From the sequence record KJ019152.1: a stretch of DNA of 64,000 bases, one strand, 5' to 3'. Within the stretch, counting starts at the first letter, position 1. Every line of letters starts with the position of its first letter. Below are positions 5,664 to 64,000 of the stretch, piece after piece. The notes below the pieces were generated by a model, which saw nothing but the letters and a program-made list of their open reading frames with translations, searched no databases and was not told the origin of the DNA. Position numbers and translations under genes: made by a program.

Positions 5664-5737
5664 GGGTCAGTAGCTCAGATGGATAGAGCAATTCACTTCT
5701 AATGAATTGGTCGGGGGTTCGAGTCCCTCCTGACCCG
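5664..5737 (+). tRNA. tRNA-Arg(TCT)
   Basis: Cloverleaf with acceptor GGGTCAG/CTGACCC, anticodon arm ATTCA-CTTCTAA-TGAAT and T loop GTTCGAG. No encoded CCA. Confidence 0.95.
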
Positions 5738-5758
5738 TTGGGGTCTAATTAACCCCAT

Positions 5759-5948
5759 AGGATGTGACAGAATGAACCGTTTGGTTAATACCGGTCATTG
5801 TATAGTAGGGAAGGCTGTGGTGGCCGCCAGAAAGACTAGGAGACTAGAGTTCTGAGAACCCATACCAGGGTCCCGAAAGTTCAGAGGTATTACTATTCTT
5901 AGTATGACCCCTCTGTTGGAGGTAAAAAGATAATCCTCCCATCCACCC
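5759..5948 (+). ncRNA. large structured RNA, probably the manA RNA motif class
   Basis: Non-coding and lies between two tRNAs. Stems include GGATG/CATCC (closing), AATGA-ACCG/CGG-TCATT, CTAG-GAGA-CTAG, CAGAGG/CCTCTG and GGAGG/CCTCC, with a possible GGTGG/CCACC pseudoknot. The manA name is from recollection, not a search. Confidence 0.6.
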
Positions 5949-5950
5949 AA

Positions 5951-6022
5951 TCCACAATAGCTCAGCGGTAGAGTCGGCGACTGTTAATCGCCTTGTCCCT
6001 GGTTCGAATCCAGGTTGTGGAG
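5951..6022 (+). tRNA. tRNA-Asn(GTT)
   Basis: Acceptor TCCACAA/TTGTGGA, anticodon arm GGCGA-CTGTTAA-TCGCC and T loop GTTCGAA. Confidence 0.95.
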
Positions 6023-32940: not shown

Positions 32941-33171
32941 ATGAGAACTACATCCTTCCTAAGGTATCTTGGAAATACCTTACTAGTGTTGGGTCATTTC
33001 ACACTCCTTTGGGGGGATACACAGACCGCCTTGACTATCAAAATCATAGGTGGTCTTTCTTTGTTACCCTTTGCCATCTCCTGGAAGTTGTGGGATGTTG
33101 TGGCACTTGAGTTAATATTTGGAGGTATGGATGTAACCAAGTTCATCCAGCTGGTGTTTTCTAACTCCTAG
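32941..33171 (+). CDS. small membrane protein
   Basis: Several hydrophobic segments. Confidence 0.65.
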   Translation: MRTTSFLRYLGNTLLVLGHFTLLWGDTQTALTIKIIGGLSLLPFAISWKLWDVVALELIFGGMDVTKFIQLVFSNS

Positions 33172-33211
33172 GGTTTCTTTATTCCCTTACAAAGATGAAG
33201 TGGCGCACCTG

Positions 33212-33332
33212 ATTGGCAAACCCAAAAATATGTGTTATACTGGGTAGGTATTGGTAGCGTTTTCAGGGGTGAATAAACTACCAATACCAATCTAAACTCA
33301 TAGAAAACCACTCCTCATGGGGTGGTTTTTTT
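33212..33332 (+). ncRNA. stand-alone promoter-hairpin-terminator unit (candidate sRNA of about 85 nt)
   Basis: TTGGCA-17 nt-TATACT, an 11-bp perfect stem GGTATTGGTAG/CTACCAATACC, then terminator AAAACCACTCC/GGGGTGGTTTT. Confidence 0.6.
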
Positions 33333-33366
33333 GTGCGCGTATAACTAGTGTAACTTGGGTTACATT

Positions 33367-33663
33367 ATGAAAGCCGACGCACAACTAGAACACCACGCCA
33401 ATTGCTGGAATGCTATTCGAAATAATGATAAGGAATACTTTAAGATAGGAGTTGGTGTTTATAAAACTATCAACGCTGATAGGGAATACTATATCAATAG
33501 TCGTATTGAAACTGATAAGAATAGTGATATATCAGAGATGGATCAAGTGAAAGAAGCCCACTCCAAACACTTAAGTTATTTTATTGGATACAAATCAGAA
33601 GTAACAGTTGAAGCTATCAGTAGTGATTGGAAATCTACCCTATACCGGGTTACTACCTGCTAG
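33367..33663 (+). CDS. hypothetical protein
   Basis: [17 protein letters not shown]... Confidence 0.6.
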
Positions 33664-33695
33664 GGTGTGTTATAATAGATGAAATGCATGTTGTG

Positions 33696-34694
33696 ATGAA
33701 AGCTTTAATCTCTGGTATAACTGGGCAGGATGGATCCTATCTTGCTGAACTTCTACTGAAGAAGGGGTATGAAGTCCATGGTATTATTCGTAGAACCTCC
33801 TCGTTTAATACAGGAAGAATCGATCATATCTTCGATCAGTTACACCTCCACTACGGGGATTTGACTGACTCCCTGAACATAGTCTCTATCATTAAGGAAG
33901 TAGAACCTGATGAGATCTACAACCTAGGGGCACAGAGTCATGTGAAAGTATCTTTCGAGGAACCTGAATATACAGCACAGACTGATGCTCTGGGAACCCT
34001 AAGAGTATTGGAGGCAGTTCGTCTCCTAGGTATGACAGATAGGGTCCGTATCTACCAGGCATCCACCAGTGAGTTGTATGGGTTAGTACAAGAAACACCA
34101 CAGAAAGAAACAACACCTTTCTACCCACGATCTCCATATGGCGTAGCTAAACTCTATGGATATTGGATTATAAAGAACTATCGTGAGAGTTATGGGATGC
34201 ACGCCAGTAGTGGTATTCTATTCAACCATGAGTCACCACGACGGGGTGAGACTTTCGTAACCCGTAAGATTACTAGGGGACTATCCCGTATTAGTACAGG
34301 ACTACAGGATTGTCTATACCTAGGTAATCTAAACTCAAGACGAGATTGGGGTCATGCTGAAGACTATGTGGAGGCTATGTGGTTGATGTTACAACAGGAA
34401 ACTCCTGATGACTATGTGATTGCCACAGGTAAAGAGTATTCAGTGAAGGACTTTGTAGAGGCATCTGCTGAATACTTTGGTATGAAGATTGAGTGGCAGG
34501 GTGAAGGATTGGATGAAGTGGGTATAGATAGATTTACAAAGAAGGTTGTCGTTCGTGTGAGTGACAAATACTTCAGACCAGCAGAGGTTGAAACTCTCTG
34601 GGGTGATCCCACTAAGGCTAAAGAGGTATTGGGTTGGAAACCTAATCATACCTTTGCTTCCCTAGTAGAAGATATGTGTATCTACGGTCAGTAA
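33696..34694 (+). CDS. gmd: GDP-mannose 4,6-dehydratase
   Basis: [35 protein letters not shown] and NHESPRRG. Confidence 0.97.
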
Positions 34695-34696
34695 TT

Positions 34697-35623
34697 ATGG
34701 AAAAAGGTGCAACGGTAGCAGTATTTGGTTCGGGTGGATTGGCTGGAAGTGCCATCACCAGGGCACTCAGGTGTTCTTTTGGGGGGTATAAGATTCTTAC
34801 TCCTAGGAGTAAAGAACTAGACCTAAGAGAACAAGCAGATGTTCGTAGTTGGTTTAAGCATAACAAAGTTGATTATGTATTCTTAGCTGCTGCCTTAGTT
34901 GGTGGTATCATGGCTAACAAGACTAGAAAGGCAGAGTTCTTACATGACAATCTAATGATGCAGTGTAATGTAATTGACTCTGCATACTATAGTGGAGTAA
35001 AGAAACTCCTATTCTTAGGTACCTCTTGTATCTATCCAGCAGGAAGACACCATCCACTAGTGGAACATGAACTACTCACAGGACTATTAGAACCAACCAA
35101 TGACGCATACGCAATCGCAAAGATCGCAGGGATCAAACAATGTGACTTCTACCGAGAACAATATGGATTTGATGCTATCTCTATCATGCCTCCTAATCTA
35201 TATGGTCCTGGAGATAATTTCAATGAGGGATCAGGACATGTCCTCGCCTCATTGATGAATAGGTTTCACCTAGCGAAGGAAGCAGGTGCATCTAGAGTTG
35301 AATGTTGGGGTGATGGATCACCTATGAGAGAGTTTCTATATGTGGATGACTTAGCAGATGCTTCCTTATACTTTATGAATAGTTATAGTGAGTCTGGGCA
35401 CATTAATACTGGGACTGGTAGGGATGTAACTATCAAACAACTAGCGGAGACTATTGCTGATGTAGTTGGATACAAAGGTGAGATAGGTTGGGATACAACT
35501 AAACCCAACGGAAACCCAAGGAAACTACTTGACAGCAGTAGGGCAAACCTGTTAGGATGGGAACCCAAGGTTAAATTTGAAGACGGAATCAAACTCACAT
35601 ACAACTGGTATCTAGCACAATGA
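34697..35623 (+). CDS. GDP-L-fucose synthase-like epimerase/reductase (Fcl/WcaG or ColC)
   Basis: FLAAALVGGIMAN, LGTSCIYP, YAIAK and WGDGSPMREFL. Confidence 0.92.
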   Translation: MEKGATVAVFGSGGLAGSAITRALRCSFGGYKILTPRSKELDLREQADVRSWFKHNKVDYVFLAAALVGGIMANKTRKAEFLHDNLMMQCNVIDSAYYSGVKKLLFLGTSCIYPAGRHHPLVEHELLTGLLEPTNDAYAIAKIAGIKQCDFYREQYGFDAISIMPPNLYGPGDNFNEGSGHVLASLMNRFHLAKEAGASRVECWGDGSPMREFLYVDDLADASLYFMNSYSESGHINTGTGRDVTIKQLAETIADVVGYKGEIGWDTTKPNGNPRKLLDSSRANLLGWEPKVKFEDGIKLTYNWYLAQ

Positions 35624-44548: not shown

Positions 44549-46840
44549 ATGGCATTTAAGATTAATGGCGTAGTACGCATTGATAATAGTGGCAACGGTT
44601 TTCTGGGAATTGTAACCGCTACCGACGCTAATATCACAGGAGTTCTCACTGCCACTGAGGTGGATGCGAAAGTATCATCTAAGGCAATAACTGAACAAAC
44701 AGATGGAACCGTAGATGATGTAACTGGTGCAGATGAACTATTACTATTAGATGCCGAGACTGGTGGATTACTAAGAGTATCAATAGATGAGTTCGTGCAG
44801 GGTTCAGGCATTGGAACTCTAGTAACGGACTTTGATAACTTAACTGTTACTGGTATCACAACCGTTGCCACCCTCAAAGGTATTGGATCTAATAACATCA
44901 GTGTAGGGAGCACACTTTCCTTTGCTGATGGTACAGAGATCATCATGGGTGACTCTGGTGACTTCAGTATTCATCATGATGGTGACCATACTTACCTAGA
45001 TGAGACGGGGCAGGGTAATCTAAAACTCCGTACAAATAACTTTAGAGTAACAAATATAGCAGAAACAAAACCAGCTATTACAGCACAGGTTACTTCTGGT
45101 GTTGAGTTGTATTTTGATGGTAATAAGAAGATAGAAACTACAAATACTGGTGTTCTTGTGAGTGGTATGCTCACTGCTGATAGATTAAGATCAGGTGATA
45201 TTGCTGCTAGAAATGTAATCACACTGGGTATTACCACTATCCAAGATCATTTGGAAGTGAATGATAGTACTGGTTCTGGTACGGAATATAATCTTAATGT
45301 TAAGACTAATGGTAGTTCTACCTTTGGTGTCTTAGGTAATGGAAATATTCTACTTGGAAACAGTTCCGGTGCTCCATTCATGGCGACGAATGATCACCAC
45401 GCAACTTCCAAGAAATATGTAGATGACGCCATCGCTGATGATCCTAGCGGTGCTGCGGCTTGGGGTACTGTTGCCGCAAACAACAGTGGTGGTGCTAGTA
45501 GTATTACTTTACTGGGTGGGATGAATGTAGCAAGTGTCACAGCTGGCACATCAAATGCAAAAGGAAATTTCGTGGTTACATTTGCCACTCCAATGCCTGA
45601 TGCAAACTATTCAGTAACCGCTAGTTATAATAACGCTAATGTTAACACATATGGGGATATTAGTGTAGGTTCTAAAACAGCAAGTAGTTTTGAGGTTCAA
45701 ACTTTTGAATCATCAAATCTGCCTGACTGGCAGGGGTTTGGATTTGTCGTCTTCGCAACCAATGCCCTCCCACCAACAGGCGGCACGGGAACAGATGCCT
45801 GGGGTGATATTGCAGCAGATGTAACGATTAACGCTAGCTTTAACATCGCTTCAGTAACTAGAACTGCCACGGGCTTCTCTGCTGTGGTGTTTAATACGCC
45901 GATGCCAAACGCTAATTACTCCGTTGTTGGTACTGTTGAGGGTAATAATGCAAGTCATAACTTAACAGTCAAAGATAAGACCGCTAACGGTTTTACTGTA
46001 GTAACTGAGTCTGGGTATGACTATGCCAAGAATAATGACGCATACAGTTTCACCGTCAACGCCACCAACGCAACGCTACCTGAAACTATTACAACGGATC
46101 AGTTTACCTCTGCGTTTAATGCTCCTACCTTCAAAAACATTCTCATCAATGGAAATCTGACAATTAATCAACGTAATGTTAATATTACATCTGTTTCTGG
46201 CGGTGAATATGGTGAAGATCGTTGGAAAAAGACATTAGGTGGGATGACGCAGATTGTTGAAGATGGTAATTATCTACCAAGTTCTTCTTACACTTTATCT
46301 GGAACAGGTATTACTACAACTACAGCAAACTCACCTGCTTCTGGTGACTGGGACATCTCAACAACCTTTGGTGATATTCCTGTTACTGCTCGTTCTATCC
46401 AACTTGAATATGGCAACGTAGCCTCAGCGTTTGACTTGAGACCGGTTGGGGTGGAGCTGAGTTTGTGTCATCGTTATTTTTATAGAATAATAAGGTCCGT
46501 CAACAGCACTCCTTTTACTATTAAATCTAACAGTAACTCAAACGACATTCCCGCTGTAGGCTCGATCGAGTGTTCTTACAATGTAGTTTTTCCAGCCACA
46601 ATGAGAACCCAACCTACTGGCTCAAATTACAGTAACAACGGAGCAAATAACTATTTGGCAATTCCAGGATATAGGGCTATTACTAACTCTTTTCTGGCAA
46701 GCGATGTAAGTTTTTCATACGCATCCTCTGAAGACGCAGTAATTTTAGTGGATACGACCTTAGGGAGCATCGGAGTAGTTCAAGGAGCTGCGTTCCCGCT
46801 AGAGGCGGCTTTTAGTTATGACATCGACGCCGAACTTTAA
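44549..46840 (+). CDS. tail fibre-like structural protein
   Basis: Late promoter, Thr/Gly/Val-rich sequence, duplicated WG...NIASV...F.TPMP.ANYSV module and a C-terminal NILINGN...QLEYG...ELSLCHRYF domain. Confidence 0.75.
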   Translation: MAFKINGVVRIDNSGNGFLGIVTATDANITGVLTATEVDAKVSSKAITEQTDGTVDDVTGADELLLLDAETGGLLRVSIDEFVQGSGIGTLVTDFDNLTVTGITTVATLKGIGSNNISVGSTLSFADGTEIIMGDSGDFSIHHDGDHTYLDETGQGNLKLRTNNFRVTNIAETKPAITAQVTSGVELYFDGNKKIETTNTGVLVSGMLTADRLRSGDIAARNVITLGITTIQDHLEVNDSTGSGTEYNLNVKTNGSSTFGVLGNGNILLGNSSGAPFMATNDHHATSKKYVDDAIADDPSGAAAWGTVAANNSGGASSITLLGGMNVASVTAGTSNAKGNFVVTFATPMPDANYSVTASYNNANVNTYGDISVGSKTASSFEVQTFESSNLPDWQGFGFVVFATNALPPTGGTGTDAWGDIAADVTINASFNIASVTRTATGFSAVVFNTPMPNANYSVVGTVEGNNASHNLTVKDKTANGFTVVTESGYDYAKNNDAYSFTVNATNATLPETITTDQFTSAFNAPTFKNILINGNLTINQRNVNITSVSGGEYGEDRWKKTLGGMTQIVEDGNYLPSSSYTLSGTGITTTTANSPASGDWDISTTFGDIPVTARSIQLEYGNVASAFDLRPVGVELSLCHRYFYRIIRSVNSTPFTIKSNSNSNDIPAVGSIECSYNVVFPATMRTQPTGSNYSNNGANNYLAIPGYRAITNSFLASDVSFSYASSEDAVILVDTTLGSIGVVQGAAFPLEAAFSYDIDAEL

Positions 46841-46882
46841 ACTCCTTAATTCCTTACAATAGAACTATCACACTTTAAAACT

Positions 46883-47125
46883 ATGGCTTATACTTACGCA
46901 TTTACTGATGCTGATAACAACAGCATCAAACGCACTGATGAAGACGGTAACGTTGCATTCGTTCCAGTCGCAGAAGGCAATCGTGACTACGCAGAATATC
47001 TATCCTCTGGTATCACTGCCGATGCATACGTAGCACCACCGGAACCAGAACCCCTTACTCCAGAAGAGAAACTAGCCAACTCTGGACTGACAGTTGATGA
47101 GCTAAAGAGTTTGTTAGATCTATAG
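46883..47125 (+). CDS. small tail-fibre-associated (chaperone-like) protein
   Basis: Follows the fibre gene; NRDYAEYL and TPEEKLANSGLTVDELKSLL. Confidence 0.55.
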   Translation: MAYTYAFTDADNNSIKRTDEDGNVAFVPVAEGNRDYAEYLSSGITADAYVAPPEPEPLTPEEKLANSGLTVDELKSLLDL

Positions 47126-47155: not shown

Positions 47156-47184
47156 TTGGCACCCTGGGGAATCTGTGTTATAAT
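47156..47184 (+). promoter_or_regulatory. psbA promoter
   Basis: TTGGCA-17 nt-TATAAT, preceded by AACTGGCAC. Confidence 0.8.
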
Positions 47185-47232
47185 AAACACATAAATAAGA
47201 AATGTAAAGTTCTTATTACAACACTTCCATCT

Positions 47233-47333
47233 AACCGAGACCTACGGGGAAGTAAAATACGTCTCTAATACCTACACCGGAGGGTGGTGTAGGAATAATA
47301 CTATCGTCAGCTCCCCCTGGCACTACTTACCCT
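47233..47333 (+). ncRNA. PhotoRC-II-like structured 5' leader of psbA
   Basis: GAGAC/GTCTC and CCTACACC/GGTGTAGG stems in the psbA leader. The family name is from recollection. Confidence 0.65.
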
Positions 47334-47342
47334 TTTTACACA

Positions 47343-48422
47343 ATGGCTTCAACACTTACACGCCGTCAAGGCGCATCTATCTGGGATCAGTTTTGTTCCT
47401 GGGTCACATCAACCAACAATCGTCTTTACGTCGGTTGGTTCGGTGTTCTAATGATTCCTACATTGTTAGCCGCAACTGTATGTTTCATTATCGCTTTCGT
47501 GGGTGCTCCCCCAGTGGACATCGACGGAATCCGTGAACCAGTAGCTGGTTCACTCATGTATGGAAACAACATCATCTCTGGTGCAGTTGTTCCTAGTTCA
47601 AACGCAATCGGTCTACACTTCTACCCAATCTGGGAAGCAGCCACACTCGACGAATGGCTCTACAACGGTGGTCCTTTCCAACTAGTTGTCTTCCACTTCC
47701 TTATTGGTATCTACGCCTATATGGGACGTGAGTGGGAACTCTCTTATCGTTTAGGTATGAGACCTTGGATCTGTGTAGCATACTCTGCACCAGTTGCAGC
47801 AGCTTCAGCAGTATTCCTAGTCTATCCTTTCGGTCAAGGTTCATTCTCAGACGCGATGCCCTTGGGTATCTCTGGAACATTCAACTACATGTTGGTCTTC
47901 CAAGCAGAACATAACATCTTGATGCACCCCTTCCACATGTTGGGAGTCGCAGGTGTCTTCGGTGGTTCATTGTTCTCAGCGATGCATGGTTCACTTGTTA
48001 CCTCTTCACTTGTCCGTGAGACAACTGAAACTGAGTCACAGAACTATGGTTACAAGTTCGGCCAAGAAGAAGAGACCTATAACATCGTGGCAGCCCATGG
48101 CTACTTCGGTCGTTTGATCTTTCAATACGCTTCATTCAACAACTCACGCTCACTCCACTTCTTCTTAGCCGCATGGCCAGTTGTGGGTATCTGGTTCACC
48201 GCACTTGGTGTTTCCACAATGGCATTCAACCTCAATGGTTTCAACTTCAACCAGTCTGTTATCGACGGACAAGGTAGAGTATTGAACACCTGGGCGGATG
48301 TTCTTAACAGAGCTGGTCTTGGGATGGAAGTAATGCATGAGAGAAATGCACACAACTTCCCACTAGATTTGGCAGCAGCTGAGTCCACACCAGTGGCTCT
48401 AATTGCACCATCTGTTGGTTGA
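47343..48422 (+). CDS. psbA: photosystem II D1 protein
   Basis: Full length and uninterrupted; NRLYVGWFG...[14 protein letters not shown]. Confidence 0.99.
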
Positions 48423-48444
48423 TCACTCAACCTGTGGTATGATA

Positions 48445-48476
48445 AAGGGGGACTTCGGTCCCCTTTCTTTTTCTTT
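48445..48476 (+). terminator. intrinsic terminator
   Basis: AAAGGGG(G)AC-TTCG-GTCCCCTTT followed by Ts. Confidence 0.85.
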
Positions 48477-48492
48477 TGTAATGTAAAGTTTT

Positions 48493-48723
48493 ATGTCTCA
48501 CGATCTAATCGAATTGCTCACTTACTATGTGATCGGTGGTGCCCTTATCATAGGACCACCCGCTATCTTTCTCATCATTGCTATGATGGCAGCACTCCAA
48601 AATACGAAAGGTCGCATGGTTGGATACAAAGATCACAAAACTTATGGTGATTCATCTATCTACGATCCGGCACCAAAATTGCCAGTAGATCAAACGAAAT
48701 TCTTCTTGGAACTAAACAATTAA
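48493..48723 (+). CDS. small membrane protein
   Basis: 76 aa with one hydrophobic helix. Confidence 0.7.
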   Translation: MSHDLIELLTYYVIGGALIIGPPAIFLIIAMMAALQNTKGRMVGYKDHKTYGDSSIYDPAPKLPVDQTKFFLELNN

Positions 48724-48734
48724 GGTAAACAAAA

Positions 48735-48782
48735 ATGACGACAAGTACACTTACAACACCACAAAGGGGGTGTATTCGTTAG
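48735..48782 (+). pseudogene. orphaned original 5' end of psbD
   Basis: Encodes MTTSTLTTPQRG, a typical cyanophage D2 N-terminus, then diverges to CIR-stop. Confidence 0.8.
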
Positions 48783-48823
48783 TCTGGAAGCAACTGACAC
48801 AAAACACAAAATATCATAGGGGT

Positions 48824-48901
48824 ATTGGCAAACCCAAAAATATGTGTTATACTGGGTAGGGATAGGTAGAGTATTCAGGGGTGAAAAGACTACCTATACC
48901 C
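48824..48901 (+). repeat. second copy of the promoter-hairpin unit at 33212
   Basis: 37 nt identical to 33212-33248, the same TTCAGGGGTGAA core, and stem ATAGGTAG/CTACCTAT. Confidence 0.9.
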
Positions 48902-49098
48902 CCCAATAATACACAGCAATAATACACAGAGAATACTTATAATAAAACCCCTACGGGGTTTGCCTACGGGCAACTGAAAGAGATATATGTATAGGGGGCA
49001 ACTGATATAACTGCTATGCCCGCTACGCCAACCTGAAAAACCACAAAGGTAGTATAACACCAGAAGTAGTTATTGGCAACTATCTAGAAACTATCTAG

Positions 49099-49127
49099 TT
49101 GCCGCAGGGGTTTTTATGCGTTATAAT
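49099..49127 (+). promoter_or_regulatory. sigma70-type promoter for the HNH operon
   Basis: TTGCCG-17 nt-TATAAT. Confidence 0.7.
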
Positions 49128-49150
49128 AATAATACCCTGAATACAAAACT

Positions 49151-49315
49151 ATGAGTATGGTGAAGCAACACCTGTGGCAAGAGCAACACGCCCCTACCGC
49201 AGAAGATATAGAAGAGTATGAGTTATACTGCTACTACCTAGATATGGTAGAGCGGTATAATACTACCGCCCCTATGAAGTTTTTAGAAGAAGTGTTTGGT
49301 GAAGAGGTAGAGTGA
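49151..49315 (+). CDS. small acidic hypothetical protein (54 aa)
   Basis: Hand-read MSMVKQHLWQEQHAPTAEDIEEYELY...; GTGA overlap with the HNH gene. Confidence 0.65.
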   Translation: MSMVKQHLWQEQHAPTAEDIEEYELYCYYLDMVERYNTTAPMKFLEEVFGEEVE

Positions 49316-49944
49316 AGCAACTAATACAAAACCCAAACAACTATACAATAACCCCAGAGGGGGTTGTATTATCTAACAAATACAAACGCCCCCTATCACT
49401 ACAATATGATAGAGGGGGCAACCCCTTCTACCAGATAAAACGCCTAGGGGGTGGTAGTAGGCAACAACTATACCAAAACAAACTACTACCCCAACACTAC
49501 CCCTTCTACTGGATAAACCAGTTAGAGGGGGGTGAAGAGTGTAGGAATATAACTTATATCTACCAACACCCTATACCCCCCTACAAATACTTTATAACCA
49601 ACAGAGGTAGGGTTTGGAGCAACCTATCTAATAGGTTTTTAGAAACCCAACACAACTATGGTAGGGGTGGATACTATGATAGAATAACCATAGATACACA
49701 CTCTGTGAATACACACTGGTTGGTAGGTAGATACTTTTTAGAGAACTGGTATGCTGGTTGCTTTGTTTGCCATAGGTGTGAAACTCTACCCTACCCAAAC
49801 AGAAACTACCCTACTAACCTGTGGGTAGGCAACAACAGCAGCAACCAGTTAGATAGTGAGAGCAAGCAGAGAACACTACACAGAAGAAAGAGAGTGAGTG
49901 AGTGTATGAGAGGCAACCAAAACTGGCGGGGCAAACACAAATAA
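49312..49944 (+). CDS. NUMOD4/HNH homing endonuclease (I-HmuI-like)
   Basis: YFITNRGRVWS (NUMOD4-like), GY, THWLVGRYF, VCH, NRNYPTNL and SNQLD. Confidence 0.85.
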   Translation: MKQLIQNPNNYTITPEGVVLSNKYKRPLSLQYDRGGNPFYQIKRLGGGSRQQLYQNKLLPQHYPFYWINQLEGGEECRNITYIYQHPIPPYKYFITNRGRVWSNLSNRFLETQHNYGRGGYYDRITIDTHSVNTHWLVGRYFLENWYAGCFVCHRCETLPYPNRNYPTNLWVGNNSSNQLDSESKQRTLHRRKRVSECMRGNQNWRGKHK

Positions 49945-50001
49945 CACACAAACTCTGTATAACTGCTCTACTACGCTTTCTAACCTAGCACTTTGTTGCT
50001 C

Positions 50002-50030
50002 TGGACTAACAGGGAGTTATGTGTTATAAT
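50002..50030 (+). promoter_or_regulatory. replacement promoter for psbD
   Basis: TGGACT-17 nt-TATAAT with extended -10 TGTG. Confidence 0.7.
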
Positions 50031-50063
50031 ATAAACATAAATACATATAACTTCACAAAAACT

Positions 50064-51122
50064 ATGACTGCTTCACTTGCACCCCCAAAAAGCAACGGGG
50101 GTTGGTATGATATTTTAGAAGACTGGTTGCAGAAAGATAGGTTTATCTTTATTGGCTGGTCTGGATTACTACTTCTTCCCACTGCTTATCTTGCCATTGG
50201 CGGCTGGCTTACTGGCACAACTTTTGTCACGAGTTGGTACACCCATGGTCTTGCTTCTTCCTATCTTGAGGGTGCTAACTTTCTCACGGCGGCTGTCTCG
50301 ACTCCTGCTGATGCTATGGGTCATTCTCTTCTTCTACTTTGGGGTCCTGAATCTCAGGGCGACTTCCAGCGGTGGCTCCAACTTGGAGGGCTTTGGTCCT
50401 TTGTTGCTCTCCACGGTGCCTTCGCTCTAATTGGATTCATGCTTCGTCAGTTCGAACTGTCACGACTCATTGGTATCCGTCCCTACAACGCTATTGCATT
50501 CAGTGGTCCTATCGCTGTATTCGTCAGTGTGTTTCTTCTATACCCACTAGGTCAATCTTCCTGGTTCTTTGCCCCCTCCTTTGGTGTGGCAGCAATCTTT
50601 AGATTCCTATTGTTTCTTCAGGGTTTCCACAACTGGACACTGAACCCCTTCCATATGATGGGAGTTGCTGGTATACTAGGTGGAGCACTACTATCTGCAA
50701 TCCATGGCGTTACTGTTGAAAATACCCTATATGAAGATGGAGAACAGAATAACACCTTCACTGCGTTCGATTCCACGCAGGAGGAAGAGACCTATTCGAT
50801 GGTTACTGCGAACCGCTTCTGGTCGCAAATCTTCGGGGTTGCGTTTAGTAATAAGCGTTGGCTTCACTTCTTTATGTTGTTTGTCCCTGTCATGGGTCTT
50901 TGGGTCTCAAGTATTGGCATCATTGGGCTTGCTCTTAATCTTCGTGCTTATGATTTTGTGAGCCAAGAGATTAGAGCAGCAGAAGATCCTGAGTTTGAAA
51001 CTTTCTACACAAAGAACATCCTTCTTAACGAAGGACTAAGAGCATGGATGGCACCTGTGGATCAACCACATGAGTCATTTGTATTCCCAGAAGAAGTTCT
51101 ACCTAGAGGTAACGCATTGTGA
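50064..51122 (+). CDS. psbD: photosystem II D2 protein with recoded N-terminus
   Basis: [17 protein letters not shown] and [10 protein letters not shown]. The N-terminus reads [31 protein letters not shown]. Confidence 0.98.
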
Positions 51123-59197: not shown

Positions 59198-62100
59198 ATG
59201 ATCTCAACAGCGACTAAGATTAAATTTAAAAGGTCTGGTGTAGCCGGACGTAGACCCTCCTTAGCTGATCTTCAGTTAGGTGAATTGGGGATCAATTATA
59301 ACGATGGTAAACTATTTTTCCGACAGGAAAATGAAGTAGTTGGCTCTCGTATCATTGAACCTGGACAGGGTGATGTAATCGGTAAGACTATTTTCGTATC
59401 CACAAAGGGTAACGATAACAATAGTGGTCTTAACGAAAGAGATGCCAAGAGAACTGTTAAAGCGGCCGCCGCAGTAGCAGAACCTGGTGACTCCATCAAA
59501 CTGTATCCAGGTCAGTACATCGAAGATAACCCTATCGTATTTAAGGATAGGGTATCTGTAGAGGGTATGGAGCTTCGTAACGTTCTCGTTACTCCAGCCA
59601 ACCCCAGTAAAGACTTGTATCAAGTTGGTGAGGCGTTCCACGCTACCAACCATTCCTTTGTGTCCAATAGGGATTCAACAGATGGTGCCTCTATTATCAC
59701 CTATCGTCCTCTAGAGGGAACTGCGTCTGACAGGTATTTTGACGCGGCTAGACTCATCAGGGACAATCTTAGCTTCATTGCTAACGAGACAGTAGGTTTC
59801 CTAACCAGTGGATATTCAGGCTTTGCCGCTGGTCAGAGATCACAGGACGCTGCTCGTGCTCTAGAACTAAACAAGAACTTCATAGTAGAAGAAGCATTTC
59901 AATATATCAACTCTCCTGATTATACAGGAGCCACATACTTCAACCCAGACCCAGCACAGTGTAAGAGAGACCTAGGAAATATCATTGATGGTTGGAGATA
60001 TGATCTCATCTCTGATGGTAACACCAGATCTACTGGTCTTGGTCTAACCTACTACGCACCTATTCCCTTTGTGAATAGTGCTAATGTTGCTGACCTTGTA
60101 TACAACAGAAATAACGGTGATGTTCTAATTGAAACCGACGTAGATACACAGGTTTCAGTTGGTGAGAAGATCAAACTACAGGATATCAGACTAGAGTGTG
60201 GTTCCTACAATAACGACTTCTTTATCACTGGTTTCAAGTATGATAACACCAGTGGTATTGGAACAGTTAATCTACCCTTTATCCATAACGTCAAGGTTGG
60301 AGACCTTGTTAAGTTTGATGGTTTAGAGTTTGATTGTCCTGCCTATGGTGCCATTGAATATGGTATCCAAGACTTCAAGTATAATGAAACTACTGGTGGA
60401 AGTGTTGTCACACTCACCGAAGATCACGATCTAAAGATTGGTGACACCATTGAACTAAGAGACCTTCAGTTCGATTGTCCCGCCTATGGTGGTGACTTCA
60501 CTAACATCATCAACCTAGAATACAATAAGACCAGTGGTCAGGGTGTTATCACATATGACAAACCCGCCGATCTCAAGTCTGGTGACGTTGTTATCCTCTA
60601 TGACCTCACACTAACTTGTGATGCTTATGGTAACGCTATCTCAGTTACTGATTTCTCTTATGATAACTTCACTGGTATCACTGAAGTAGAAGTAAATAGA
60701 CCCCACAACCTCCGTCCCGGAGACCTAATCAAACTAGAGAACCTTAAGTTCTCTTGTGATTCCTACCTTAATGAAACATACAAGGTCTCTAACTTTGTAT
60801 ATAATGAGAGCACTGGTGATAGTGTCCTCACCCTAACTGAACCACATAGTTTAGTTGCTGGTAAGAACGTCAGACTTGCTGACCTAGTTTTCTCCTGTAA
60901 CTCCTATGTTCCAACCGCTAAAGCAATCTCTGATTTCCAGTATGATGAAGTAGTTGGTATCTCTACTATTACTCTAGCATCTCCACACAACTTATCAGTT
61001 GGTGAGCAGTTCAGACTAGAGGACCTAGTATTCTCCTGTAACTCATACTCCTTCACTGATATTCCTATCATTGATGCACCATATGATAATGTAACTGGTT
61101 ATGTAACCCTATCGTTCTCTGGTGACCACGGACAACAGGTTGGTGAGAGAGTAAGACTCAGAGATATTGAGTACTCCTGCCCTGGTGGTTCAGGTATCAC
61201 TACAACCTTGTTCCCCGATGGAACCTTTGGTTATGAGTTTGAAATCCTAAGTGTTCCAAACACTAAGAAGATGATTCTTAATGTTGGCACCTCCACTATT
61301 GAACACTCCTATGTGAGTGGTGGTACTGCTACCGTTGGTATTACAACTACTATCTTCCCTGATGGAACACAAGGTTTCGACTTCAATGTATCCAGTGTTA
61401 ATAGTTCCACTGTTATCGAAGCAAGTGTTGGTATTTCTACCATCGCTCACAACTATGTTTCTGGTGGATCATTATTCGTTGGTTTCACTACCACAGTATT
61501 CCCCGATGGAACACAAGGTGATACCTTCAGAGTTAATTCTATTCCTTCTAGCACTCAAATCAGTGTTAATGTTGGTGTATCTTCTATCGCCCATACTTTC
61601 GTATCCGGTGGTACAGCAACTGACCTAGACTCTTTCATCCCTGTATCTGGTTTCACCTACAATGAAGGTGACGGAACTGGACTAGTATCCCTAGACAAGG
61701 CACACAACCTAGTGGTTGGTGACTCTTTTGTTCTAGAGGATCTTAAGTTCAACTGTAACTCCTACAGAACAGGTGGTACTTCTACTATTGATATCACTAA
61801 CTTTGAGTATGATAAGGTAACCGGACTATCTACAGTCACACTATCTTCTTCACACAACCTACATGTTAATGATACCGTAGCACTATATGATATCAAGTTC
61901 TCTTGTCCTGGTGGTTCAGGTATTACAACTAATATCTTCCCCGATGGAACCAGAGACAACTTCTATGATGTAGTTGCTGACCTAAACCCCAACCAGATTA
62001 TTGTTCGTGTTGGTAAGTCTGACATTACTCACACATACGCTAGTGGTGGTAGTCTATCCGTTGGTATCACTACTAACATCTTCCCTGATGGAACCAGACC

Positions 62101-64000
62101 TTCTGGTGACTTCTTCCAGGTCATCTCTGTCCCCTCTACCAAGTCTGTTCTAACTCAGGTTGGTCTATCCTCTATCGCCCACTCATACGCAAGTGGTGGT
62201 AAGTTCTACACTGGTATCACTACCAATGTATTCCCACAGGTATTCACTGACCCCAACATCAAGGTAACCAACGCTGTATATGACGAAGTATCTGGTGTTA
62301 TCACCATTACTACTAACAAGGCACACGGACTTACCGCTACCGCACCTGTTCTACTACAGGACCTAAACTTCTCTTGCCTCTCTGGTGGTGTAGGAAACAC
62401 CCCAGGCAACCTTGTATTCCCCAGGAACCAGGAAGTTTATGATGTTGTGTCCGTTCTATCTACTACACAATATACGATCAATGTAGGTCCTTCTGACTTC
62501 GCTCACGCATATGTTGATGGTGGTACTTCTACCACACAGAACATCACTAAGGCATCCTACAACAAAGGAACTGGTGATCTAACAGTAACCCTAGACAAGC
62601 AACACGGTTATTCAGTTGGTGATCGTGCTAGTGTGGTTGATCTCCTCTTCTCCTGTCAGTCTGGTGGTCCTAACAACCAACCTGGAACACTTCTATTCCC
62701 TCGTCCTACTGATGAGTATGAAGTTCTATCCGCAAGTGGTAAGACACTCACAGTTAATGTTGGAGCGTTCCCATCACTAGTTCATACCTATAAGAATGGT
62801 GGATCACTAACCTATAGTTCTACTGTACTTCCTGTAAGTAACGCAGTTTATGATCAATCAACTGGAGTTCTAACACTTACCACATCAATTGCACTAGGGG
62901 CACCTGTTGGTTCTACCATTAAGATGCAGGGTCTAAACTTCTCCTGTGCCTCTGGTGGTCCTGGTAATGACGCTGGTGCTATTGTATTCCCAAGACTAGA
63001 CACCCCTACCTTCAAGGTTAAGGAAGTCAAGAGTGGTGTATCCTATGTTATCAATGTAGGAACCTCTACACTCTCACACACATATACATCTGGTGGTTTC
63101 TCCTCACTCAAGAAGTTGAAGAACGACCCCAATATTTTCAAAGTTATCGACACCCCAACACCTAGTAAGGTTATTACTAATGTAGGTGTCTCATCTATCG
63201 TTCATGACTATGTGAGTGGTGGTAATATGTTCGTGGGTATCACCACTAATGTATTCCCTGATGGAACTCGCCCTGATGGAAGTAGGTTCGAAGTTATCTC
63301 CGCCCTATCACCCAACCAGGCACTCATCAACATCGGTGTTTCTACTATCACCCACAACTACGATAGTGGTGGTAGGATGCAGTATGGTACTACCAATGAG
63401 AGACCTGTTCTAGACTTCCTATACGATGGTCAGACTGGTATCTCCACTGTAACTATTAGAGGAACTCATGGTTTGAACCAGGGTGACCTAGTGAAACTCA
63501 GAGGTCTTGAGTTCGCTTGTACTAACTCACCTGGTATTACAACTACTATCTTCCCAGATGGAACTGCCGCTGGTCTCAATATCTACAAGGTTACTGAGAT
63601 TATTAGTAACAGTACCTTCAAGACAAATGTAGGTAGAGTTGGATTCGATCATACTTACATCCAAGGTGGTTCCGCTTTCGTTGGTATCACTACTAACATC
63701 TTCCCAGATGGAACACAAGGTTACAACTATACAGTTGCCGCCATTCCTAATAAGAATCAGGTAACAGTTGATGTGGGTATCTCCAGTATCCAACATGATT
63801 ATATTCGTGGTGGATCACTATTCTCTGGTAAGACTAACGAGAGAGATATCGCAGACTTCAAGTATGATCACATCTCTGGTGATGCGGTTCTTACCTTCAG
63901 AAAGGCACAGAACTTATTCACACAAGATCTAGTAAAACTTAAGAACCTTCAGTTTGATTGTCCAAACTCTACTGGTATCACTACTACTCTCTTCCCAGAC
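59198..64000 (+). CDS. giant repeat-rich virion structural protein (at least 1601 aa, 3' end outside window)
   Basis: Starts MISTATKIKFKRSGVAGRRPSLADLQLGELGINYNDGKLF. Spot checks are in frame to the last codon (GITTTLFPD), with many GITT.IFPDG and Y.SGG repeats. It is absent from the ORF track, presumably because it has no stop in the window. Confidence 0.85.
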   Translation, partial: MISTATKIKFKRSGVAGRRPSLADLQLGELGINYNDGKLFFRQENEVVGSRIIEPGQGDVIGKTIFVSTKGNDNNSGLNERDAKRTVKAAAAVAEPGDSIKLYPGQYIEDNPIVFKDRVSVEGMELRNVLVTPANPSKDLYQVGEAFHATNHSFVSNRDSTDGASIITYRPLEGTASDRYFDAARLIRDNLSFIANETVGFLTSGYSGFAAGQRSQDAARALELNKNFIVEEAFQYINSPDYTGATYFNPDPAQCKRDLGNIIDGWRYDLISDGNTRSTGLGLTYYAPIPFVNSANVADLVYNRNNGDVLIETDVDTQVSVGEKIKLQDIRLECGSYNNDFFITGFKYDNTSGIGTVNLPFIHNVKVGDLVKFDGLEFDCPAYGAIEYGIQDFKYNETTGGSVVTLTEDHDLKIGDTIELRDLQFDCPAYGGDFTNIINLEYNKTSGQGVITYDKPADLKSGDVVILYDLTLTCDAYGNAISVTDFSYDNFTGITEVEVNRPHNLRPGDLIKLENLKFSCDSYLNETYKVSNFVYNESTGDSVLTLTEPHSLVAGKNVRLADLVFSCNSYVPTAKAISDFQYDEVVGISTITLASPHNLSVGEQFRLEDLVFSCNSYSFTDIPIIDAPYDNVTGYVTLSFSGDHGQQVGERVRLRDIEYSCPGGSGITTTLFPDGTFGYEFEILSVPNTKKMILNVGTSTIEHSYVSGGTATVGITTTIFPDGTQGFDFNVSSVNSSTVIEASVGISTIAHNYVSGGSLFVGFTTTVFPDGTQGDTFRVNSIPSSTQISVNVGVSSIAHTFVSGGTATDLDSFIPVSGFTYNEGDGTGLVSLDKAHNLVVGDSFVLEDLKFNCNSYRTGGTSTIDITNFEYDKVTGLSTVTLSSSHNLHVNDTVALYDIKFSCPGGSGITTNIFPDGTRDNFYDVVADLNPNQIIVRVGKSDITHTYASGGSLSVGITTNIFPDGTRPSGDFFQVISVPSTKSVLTQVGLSSIAHSYASGGKFYTGITTNVFPQVFTDPNIKVTNAVYDEVSGVITITTNKAHGLTATAPVLLQDLNFSCLSGGVGNTPGNLVFPRNQEVYDVVSVLSTTQYTINVGPSDFAHAYVDGGTSTTQNITKASYNKGTGDLTVTLDKQHGYSVGDRASVVDLLFSCQSGGPNNQPGTLLFPRPTDEYEVLSASGKTLTVNVGAFPSLVHTYKNGGSLTYSSTVLPVSNAVYDQSTGVLTLTTSIALGAPVGSTIKMQGLNFSCASGGPGNDAGAIVFPRLDTPTFKVKEVKSGVSYVINVGTSTLSHTYTSGGFSSLKKLKNDPNIFKVIDTPTPSKVITNVGVSSIVHDYVSGGNMFVGITTNVFPDGTRPDGSRFEVISALSPNQALINIGVSTITHNYDSGGRMQYGTTNERPVLDFLYDGQTGISTVTIRGTHGLNQGDLVKLRGLEFACTNSPGITTTIFPDGTAAGLNIYKVTEIISNSTFKTNVGRVGFDHTYIQGGSAFVGITTNIFPDGTQGYNYTVAAIPNKNQVTVDVGISSIQHDYIRGGSLFSGKTNERDIADFKYDHISGDAVLTFRKAQNLFTQDLVKLKNLQFDCPNSTGITTTLFPD

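Follow-up and report, generated by a model that had tools for sequence, protein, structure and literature searches.

A candidate free-standing homing-endonuclease cassette at the 5' end of psbD in a marine cyanophage, with its own promoter and a replacement gene start

Among described systems, the closest analogue of the element reported here is the group of endonuclease "hybrid genes" of fungal mitochondria, found at atp6 of Allomyces macrogynus, at atp6, atp9, cox2, and nad3 of Glomus, at atp9 of Rhizopus, and at cox2 of Mortierella (PMC3630166). In those cases, the free-standing endonuclease gene is embedded in a conserved gene of energy metabolism and brings with it a foreign, diverged copy of the end that it displaces, so that the host gene works without splicing; what remains of the native end is an unexpressed remnant. 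We describe a locus with the same properties at psbD, the gene for the photosystem II reaction-center protein D2, in Synechococcus phage ACG-2014f isolate Syn7803C25 (KJ019152.1), a 221-kb T4-like cyanomyovirus (Kyanoviridae, Atlauavirus). The window analyzed is a 64,000-nt stretch of this record, and its region 47300-51200 matches the isolate at 100% identity. In the window, the native remnant of psbD occupies positions 48735-48790 and the foreign start of the gene, hereafter the head, occupies 50064-50135. The two systems differ in which end is exchanged. Fungal hybrid genes have a replaced 3' end with the endonuclease downstream of it, and the endonuclease open reading frame (ORF) is in many cases in phase with the host gene, whereas in psbD it is the 5' end that is replaced, with the endonuclease lying upstream; the element must therefore also supply a promoter and a start codon. 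The nucleases (LAGLIDADG or GIY-YIG in fungi, HNH here) and the hosts (mitochondrion versus T4-like cyanophage) differ as well.

Homing endonuclease genes (HEGs) of phages provide further points of comparison. F-CphI, associated with psbA of S-PM2, is likewise a free-standing homing endonuclease of a T4-like cyanophage connected with a photosystem II reaction-center gene (Zeng, Bonocora and Shub 2009, cited in PMC3037559). As summarized in that citing source, F-CphI is encoded outside and downstream of psbA and cuts the intron-insertion site of intron-less psbA; unlike the psbD cassette, on this account, it neither interrupts coding sequence nor duplicates a gene end. SegF, SegG, and MobE of T4 share with the psbD cassette a stand-alone HEG, a dedicated promoter, and presence/absence polymorphism, and they are described as cleaving in a neighboring gene with localized co-conversion of flanking markers (Belle et al. 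2002, Liu et al. 2003, cited in PMC3037559). In the same summary, the T4 Seg and Mob genes are intergenic and have no duplicated gene end, whereas the psbD cassette lies within an ORF, between two diverged 55-58-nt copies of the head. The 210-residue nuclease of the psbD cassette (ORF210) resembles I-HmuI of Bacillus phage SPO1 (PDB 1u3e) in its N-terminal beta-hairpin (NUMOD4-like) and HNH catalytic architecture. I-HmuI is intron-encoded and has C-terminal helical and helix-turn-helix modules, both of which are missing from ORF210. ORF210, for its part, carries a basic tail and one more NUMOD4-like module at the N-terminus. As an enzyme, I-HmuI is a nickase, and F-CphI belongs to a nuclease family other than that of ORF210. 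In Aeromonas phage Aeh1, mobE is a free-standing HNH-type HEG lying inside nrdA without an intron, as in psbD, but both halves of Aeh1 nrdA are expressed and assemble into an active enzyme. In psbD, by contrast, the upstream piece is a dead stub of 15 codons and the downstream gene is complete by itself. A literature search found no description of the psbD cassette element.

ACG-2014f corresponds to "lineage VI" among 142 cyanophages obtained on one host from two water samples (PMC5112629). The 1.33-kb psbD insertion is carried by 8 of ~40 sequenced sister isolates, or about one in five (nine records, one being a RefSeq duplicate), and is missing at this single site from ~30 sister isolates whose flanks are at least 98% identical. 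Empty ACG-2014f records align to the window in two pieces, with an unbroken 1,056-nt psbD directly following a 76-amino-acid upstream gene. The locus is thus an intron-less insertion polymorphism with natural empty sites. Because eight separately assembled isolates share the insertion and others lack it, it is neither a matter of chance nor an assembly artifact; the latter is ruled out as well by two metagenome contigs with diverged copies of the cassette. Across 50,697 phage records, no element DNA was found beyond ACG-2014f psbD except for two short paralogous pieces.

We favor, with a probability of roughly 0.68, the view that this is a free-standing, intron-less homing-endonuclease cassette at psbD codon 19 that brings a promoter and a replacement 5' end to the gene. 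psbD would stay functional without splicing because the cassette carries both. A first-pass annotation of the DNA had read the locus in these terms; it proved right in outline, and every feature that it listed was found where it had been placed. The features, all on the + strand, are as follows, with promoters scored as sigma-70-like matches over 12 consensus positions.

48735-48790, + strand: dead native psbD 5' remnant, 56 nt; codons 1-12 intact, nt 39-56 scrambled
48791-50063, + strand: cassette proper, 1,273 bp; present in eight isolates, absent from empty sites
48825-48853, + strand: putative promoter P1; TTGGCA, 17-nt spacer, TATACT, extended -10 TG; 10 of 12 consensus positions
48859-48901, + strand: leader hairpin RNA predicted by folding; lower stem, internal loop, apical UUCA-GGGG-UGAA mini-stem
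49099-49127, + strand: putative promoter P2, ahead of ORF54 and the HNH gene; TTGCCG, 17-nt spacer, TATAAT; 10 of 12 consensus positions
49151-49315, + strand: ORF54, a small acidic protein with core motif D-x-EEYELY; matches phrog_10005
49312-49944, + strand: predicted I-HmuI-like HNH endonuclease, 210 amino acids (ORF210); two NUMOD4-like beta-hairpin modules, HNH core, short basic tail
50002-50030, + strand: putative promoter P3; TGGACT, 17-nt spacer, TATAAT, extended -10 TG; 10 of 12 consensus positions
50064-50135, + strand: cassette-linked psbD head, codons 1-24; near-invariant among the eight carriers
50064-51122, + strand: functional psbD (D2, 352 amino acids); intact ORF, Pfam Photo_RC E = 4.6e-72

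The boundaries of the insertion can be read from the carriers. The native start codon at 48735 encodes MTTSTLTTPQRG and then breaks off into CIR and a TAG stop at 48780-48782, as the first-pass annotation had described. The first 38 nt of the remnant are identical to empty-site psbD, and window nucleotides 48773-48790 correspond to psbD nt 39-55 in scrambled, +1-frameshifted form, with one extra base. Seven of the eight carriers read ...AGGGGGTG TATTCGTTAGTCTGGAAG|CAACTGAC at the left junction. The eighth, Syn7803US37, reads ...AGGGGGTG GTATGATATTTTGGAAG|CAACTGAC and has unscrambled psbD through nt 55, its intact psbD sequence ending ...TTTTGGAAG|CAACTGAC (GGAAG|CAACTGAC). Since this isolate keeps unscrambled psbD up to that point, the true left junction is g48790|c48791, at psbD nt 55 in codon 19, and lies 18 nt further 3' than position 48772, where it had been put before; the functional copy has the matching position at 50121|50122. 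The locus therefore consists of the head remnant, the cassette, and a complete psbD with a second copy of the head, comprising the first 58 nt of the gene and ~35% diverged from the native head. That second start, at 50064, opens an intact 352-residue D2, and the count of 7 differing residues out of 18 in its head is correct against the cyanobacterial consensus. Within the scrambled part of the remnant, 7 changes fall within 12 nt compared with none in the preceding 38 nt, a pattern that makes neutral decay a doubtful cause. In composition, the cassette has the highest A content of all 1.27-kb stretches of the window. GCAAC occurs 12 times on its + strand against 1.45 expected, a count reached by none of 2,000 shuffles and ~10-fold above the frequency elsewhere in the window; the left junction itself, GGAAG|CAAC, creates a 13th copy.

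An insertion of this kind in a photosynthesis gene could instead be a self-splicing group I or II intron with an HNH ORF, in the manner of S-PM2 psbA, that joins an exon 1 at 48735-~48772 to an exon 2 from ~50102 onward. Cyanophage psbA introns are indeed known (Zeng et al. 2009, as cited in PMC3037559), and an in-frame join can be drawn on paper at GGGGGTG|GTATGAT. Yet no Rfam group I or II intron model matched at E ≤ 10 within 48400-50400 or at the gathering score anywhere in the window, and none of the three possible boundary placements yields both a terminal U in the 5' exon and a terminal G in the intron. The 3' end of the insert carries its own promoter, ATG, and complete homologous head; the native sequence of Syn7803US37 runs on to 48790; and in seven of the eight carriers, the putative exon 1 contains a frameshift and a stop. 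With no intron signature, splicing is very unlikely, in agreement with the original claim of invasion without it, and the intron is the least probable of the explanations that we weighed.

The first-pass annotation had called the cassette gene a NUMOD4/HNH endonuclease, and its HNH part was borne out by a family profile and by a structural match to I-HmuI. Taken alone, ORF210 retrieved only NUMOD4 from Pfam, at an E-value of 0.16 that falls under the Pfam cut-off, and no HNH match; PHROGs returned weak HNH families (E = 1e-6 and 2e-5). Relatives were recovered as 121 cluster representatives by an exhaustive HMMER search versus two by a word-indexed protein search. NUMOD4 was detected in 41 of 50 aligned relatives (best E 2e-14). 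In this 50-member alignment, H154, E157, N169, and K185 do not vary, and conservation is at least 90% at N178 and D181; the catalytic motif of ORF210, VCHRCE..N..NLWVGNNSSNQ, follows the H-N-N/H pattern (H154, N169, N178). The family profile matched I-HmuI (PDB 1u3e_M) over the catalytic half with E = 8.7e-14. An AlphaFold (AF2) model of ORF210, with a predicted local distance difference test (pLDDT) score of 88.3, matched the same chain in Foldseek (E = 6.7e-5, probability 1.00), the sole PDB match below 1e-3. The C-terminus is a 25-residue basic tail of low model confidence. A GAGG ribosome-binding site and the putative promoter P2 are candidate expression signals of the nuclease gene, and its distant relatives are free-standing genes at typical HEG positions, such as between regA and hsp20 in S-H34. 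Profile and model together point to ORF210 as an I-HmuI-like relative of the HNH homing endonucleases. Cleavage of psbD by this protein, the position of the cut, active homing, and immunity of the cassette-linked head are inferred.

The cassette extends beyond cultured ACG-2014f isolates. ORF54 and the HNH ORF overlap by 4 nt, suggesting translational coupling, and neither gene is disrupted in any of the eight carriers or in either of two metagenome variants. Between diverged copies, the ratio of nonsynonymous to synonymous substitution rates (dN/dS) is 0.25-0.35 for the two genes (~0.25-0.3 for the HNH gene), which indicates purifying selection on both. One metagenome variant, an 861-nt TARA contig (L022), has the order hairpin, P2, ORF54, HNH gene (76% identity), and P3. 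The other, a 1,060-nt contig (L023, ERZ891134), has P2, ORF54, the HNH gene, P3, and a psbD start of the APPKSNGG type, so named for its residues; here, the cassette-type head is joined to a different psbD background. A ~190-nt segment at 48906-49098, nearly invariant among carriers, is missing from the TARA and ERZ variants.

Promoter content had been part of the original proposal, and a consensus scan returned exactly P3 as the fresh promoter at 50002-50030. P3, situated 34 nt before the new start codon of psbD, is conserved in both metagenome variants, where P2 is also kept nearly base for base. Over 24 nt, the -10 element of P3 and the sequence after it match the psbA promoter region (47174-47197) with 92% identity. 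In empty isolates, psbD begins 11 nt past the upstream gene and has no promoter of its own, so the cassette adds a psbA-like promoter. A scan of the window found no terminator between P1 or P2 and psbD; read-through into psbD is therefore possible as well. By their match to consensus, P1, P2, and P3 would each serve as promoters. The psbA promoter itself consists of TTGGCA, a 17-nt spacer, and TATAAT, followed in the leader by a PhotoRC-II RNA motif (69.4 bits; window 47156-47306); P3 copies promoter-proximal psbA sequence and not this RNA motif. GenBank records KJ019111, KJ019085, KJ019144, KJ019091, KJ019142, and KJ019155, all from carriers, place the psbD start at an ATG 45 nt further upstream (window 50019-50063). 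This start is probably mis-called because the ATG falls within the -10 region of P3. RefSeq copies label psbD "photosystem II D1", and the psbD remnant is unannotated in every record.

Over 77 nt, P1 and the leader hairpin share 91% identity with the promoter and hairpin elements of a small-RNA-like gene (33212-33288). The same two-tier hairpin, with a lower stem that differs yet still pairs, occurs in this 33.2-kb paralog, in the TARA contig, and in two further sequences described below (L146 and L004). The small-RNA-like gene as a whole (33212-33335) has a TTGGCA, 17-nt spacer, TATACT promoter, the two-tier hairpin, and a strong intrinsic terminator; its fold z-score is -7.5, it is unannotated, and it is present in most ACG-2014f genomes. 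Compared with the cassette P1 and leader, it shows a compensatory change in the stem. A sub-threshold match to the wcaG RNA at 33121-33214 (30.7 bits versus a gathering score of 42, E = 6e-4) adjoins this gene and the GDP-mannose dehydratase-like and epimerase-like genes at 33627-35623, upstream of both. On the minus strand of the cassette, a promoter-like site at 49051-49079 (TTGCCA, 17-nt spacer, TATACT, TG) points back at the leader RNA.

We then compared the psbD heads of carriers and empty isolates, which are cited below by the end of their names (C16 for Syn7803C16). Across codons 1-24, the carriers differ at one site, 50132, where US37 has a synonymous CAG/CAA change, despite differing flanks. 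The next polymorphic site, 50145 (DRF-I/V-F), goes with the flank haplotype; DRFIFIG, which had been counted among the element-linked residues, is thus a flank polymorphism, with DRFVF in six carriers. Empty isolates have at least five head classes:

canonical WFDVLDDWVKR, in 11 records (US30 is canonical)
C80 type, of the WYDILEDW kind, as is US17
US17 and US3 types, including WFDVLDDWVKR-IF
WFDLLDDWIKR, in C58
MTTSTL chimera, in C16 and KJ019151

A further observation concerns L144 (KJ019037.1; 3690-3840), where a fifth empty psbD allele class (WFDLLDDWIKRDRFIF) is accompanied by a diverged downstream psbD body; this class is probably common to ~10 more isolates that ranked low in the head search. 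The chimeric allele of C16 and KJ019151 combines MTTSTL with the APPKSNGG part. Its first 18 nt and the sequence upstream are native, and its downstream sequence is of the C80 type, so that it looks like the product of either short-patch conversion by a cassette-type head or deletion of the cassette between two heads. The first-pass annotation had taken the diverged head as exclusive to carriers and had named relatives with that head but no HNH gene as an observation against its proposal. In formal terms such relatives exist, with parts of that head: APPKSNGG occurs in empty C16 and KJ019151, and WYDILEDW occurs in ~10 further empty isolates. The supply of a promoter and a diverged head by the cassette stands; recoding of the head by the element does not, as the head is a piece of another psbD allele. 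We regard it as a traveling piece because a diverged cassette, in L023, precedes the same head type.

The occurrence of APPKSNGG and WYDILEDW heads without a cassette also invites the reading that the cassette-type head is an old natural psbD allele, upstream of which the cassette was inserted by chance and to which it is linked by proximity alone. We consider this highly unlikely. The empty alleles are chimeric, with the first 18 nt and upstream sequence native and the downstream part E1-type; they are better read as conversion or excision footprints. In INPHARED, IMG/VR, and 185,579 genomes, the head type is otherwise found only beside cassettes, and it recurs in a different psbD background behind a cassette of 76% identity. 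The near-invariance of the head in eight carriers with differing flanks likewise argues against chance linkage. The coding pattern for G-W-Y-D-I-L-E-D-W was absent from 185,579 species genomes and in IMG/VR occurred solely in ACG-2014f, with the APPKSNGG-type pattern likewise confined to ACG-2014f; the canonical head pattern matched at least 120 cyanobacterial contigs. The unusual residues thus belong specifically to this cassette-associated gene pool. Near the junction, the sole change common to both cassette-linked heads and found in no empty allele is TTA (A at 50117) versus YTG. The WYDILEDW change as an immunity determinant is weakened, as the motif occurs also in empty alleles and in the US37 remnant.

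The signs of cassette mobility are indirect, and the first comes from the flanking sequence of sister phages. The 3.9-kb right flank of US37 has 13-19 differences to empty US4 and C16 versus ~206 to other carriers. By flank, the nearest empty relative of the window isolate is C80, and that of six other carriers is US30. Carriers are thus not monophyletic in their flanks, which comprise several haplotypes. Variation within the cassette is patchy: a 28-site block in ORF54 is common to C11 and C29, there is a block at 49336-49386 in US37 and another at 49639-49659 in C29, and a C-terminal indel block is common to US13 and C29. This patchiness indicates recombination with other cassette variants. 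Among empty isolates only, nucleotide diversity (pi) is 0.136 in psbD nt 1-100 versus 0.011 elsewhere, a ~13-fold difference. Diversity peaks at nt 25-75 around the junction, within a peak spanning nt 1-95, and falls to zero at ~nt 100; the 970-nt psbD body has 0-10 differing sites among 15 isolates. The psbD bodies found in carriers C14 and C11 recur unchanged in three empty isolates, each of which has a different head. The end points of apparent conversion vary, and chimeric heads occur. A hot spot of this shape fits nuclease-induced localized recombination with co-conversion, but free recombination in the population (PMC5112629) keeps it from being proof.

The same data have to be set against a history without homing, in which the cassette was captured once, illegitimately, together with a neighboring psbD start, no longer homes, and has since been shuffled by ordinary homologous recombination. 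The HNH protein would then be inactive, non-specific, or otherwise employed, and head variation would reflect general recombination or selection on D2. High recombination within the lineage (PMC5112629), the existence of head variants without the cassette, a nuclease target site that rests on inference, and the lack of recognizable C-terminal DNA-binding modules in ORF210 are all compatible with such a history. We nevertheless judge it rather improbable, while giving it more weight than any other rival. Both ORFs show purifying selection over 24-30% protein divergence, and the catalytic H/N/N residues are invariant in 50 relatives. The hot spot is ~95 nt wide, centered on the junction, and 13 times above background, while the adjacent 970 nt are nearly identical, and the same cassette and head type recur in a second, diverged psbD background.

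For the homing cassette, the following history can be proposed. A donor lineage would have carried the cassette immediately upstream of psbD. The nuclease would cut or nick a cassette-less psbD near nt 55, whereupon homologous copying from the donor psbD would mend the right end of the break, proceeding leftwards across the head, promoter, and cassette. The left end would be closed by illegitimate joining at GGAAG|CAAC, duplicating the gene start. From then on, the remnant and the upstream gene could act as the left homology arm and the psbD body as the right arm, so that the cassette would move among co-infecting ACG-2014f phages by ordinary break-induced recombination. Partial repair and cassette loss may leave chimeric heads, and the first ~100 nt of psbD would become a hot spot.

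Several observations weigh against this account. WYDILEDW and APPKSNGG heads are known without the cassette, and the head is not strictly element-specific. Because the US37 remnant belongs to the WYDILE type, that type is not simply the immune allele. Nor does this account cover the clustered scrambling of remnant nt 39-56. The C-terminal helix-turn-helix (NUMOD1-like) modules of I-HmuI were not found in ORF210, whose alignment to 1u3e ends at residue 114 of 174. High within-population recombination has been reported for ACG-2014f (PMC5112629), and carrier polyphyly and mosaic heads are therefore no proof of homing. Finally, a donor with the cassette upstream of an unduplicated psbD was not found: a protein-pattern scan of metagenome contigs gave no match, IMG/VR gave only the ACG-2014f record itself, and a DNA-pattern scan of metagenomes gave the single 1,060-nt contig L023, which ends early on the left.

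ORF54 also has wider relatives. Directly upstream of HNH relatives at ~40% identity, metagenome contigs L146 (86-375) and L147 (412-567) encode a small ORF homologous to ORF54, coupled to the HNH gene and with the same D-x-EEYELY core; L146 also has a promoter and two-tier hairpin leader of the cassette kind. This arrangement suggests a conserved three-part cassette family. One isolate has a second cassette (L004, KJ019101.1, 930-1900) between gp32 and petE, with a P1-like promoter and hairpin and a 51-residue ORF54 homolog of 72% identity. On the opposite strand lies a gene for a 210-residue GIY-YIG-like protein with a NUMOD3 repeat (20.2 bits versus a cut-off of 20.4), and the leader and small-ORF module is thus common to two nuclease families. 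Tentatively, and as a proposal that may well be wrong in part or in whole, these loci could represent an undescribed modular family of marine-cyanophage homing cassettes in which the EEYELY protein or RNA is a new accessory or regulator of homing, acting in specificity, immunity, or timing, and in which repeated cassette attack and repair diversify the otherwise near-invariant D2 N-terminus. A weak "positive selection" signal at psbD was reported for this lineage from a McDonald-Kreitman test and doubted by its own report (PMC5112629), and the mosaic psbD head is a plausible cause of it; diversification by cassette attack, if true, would explain the signal.

Other features of the window lie apart from psbD. 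A manA RNA motif (90 bits) is located between two tRNA genes at 5664-6022. The tail-fiber gene upstream of psbA (44549-47125; L014-L020) exists in at least two forms among isolates, either 2,292-2,316 nt plus an 80-residue ORF or a single gene of 2,370-2,409 nt; all carriers have the first form. At 60200-63900, families of 54-113-nt imperfect direct repeats (63-77% identity) occupy a large ORF region and look like repeated protein modules of a structural gene.

The population that contains the element amounts to a natural experiment: the ~40 sister phages, sympatric and in culture on Synechococcus WH7803, comprise eight carriers and at least five kinds of empty allele, together with apparent conversion footprints, so that homing, immunity, and cassette loss are directly testable. 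Splicing and gene splitting are two ways in which a selfish nuclease gene can reside inside an essential phage gene. If the favored reading holds, the psbD cassette would illustrate a third, namely replacement of the gene start and promoter with an element-borne copy, the mirror image of the 3'-end hybrid genes of fungi. A photosynthesis gene could in this manner be rewired to a promoter carried by a mobile element. Within this phage population, the first 30 residues of D2, a core photosystem II protein, are hypervariable, and the cassette would also provide a specific explanation that can be tested.

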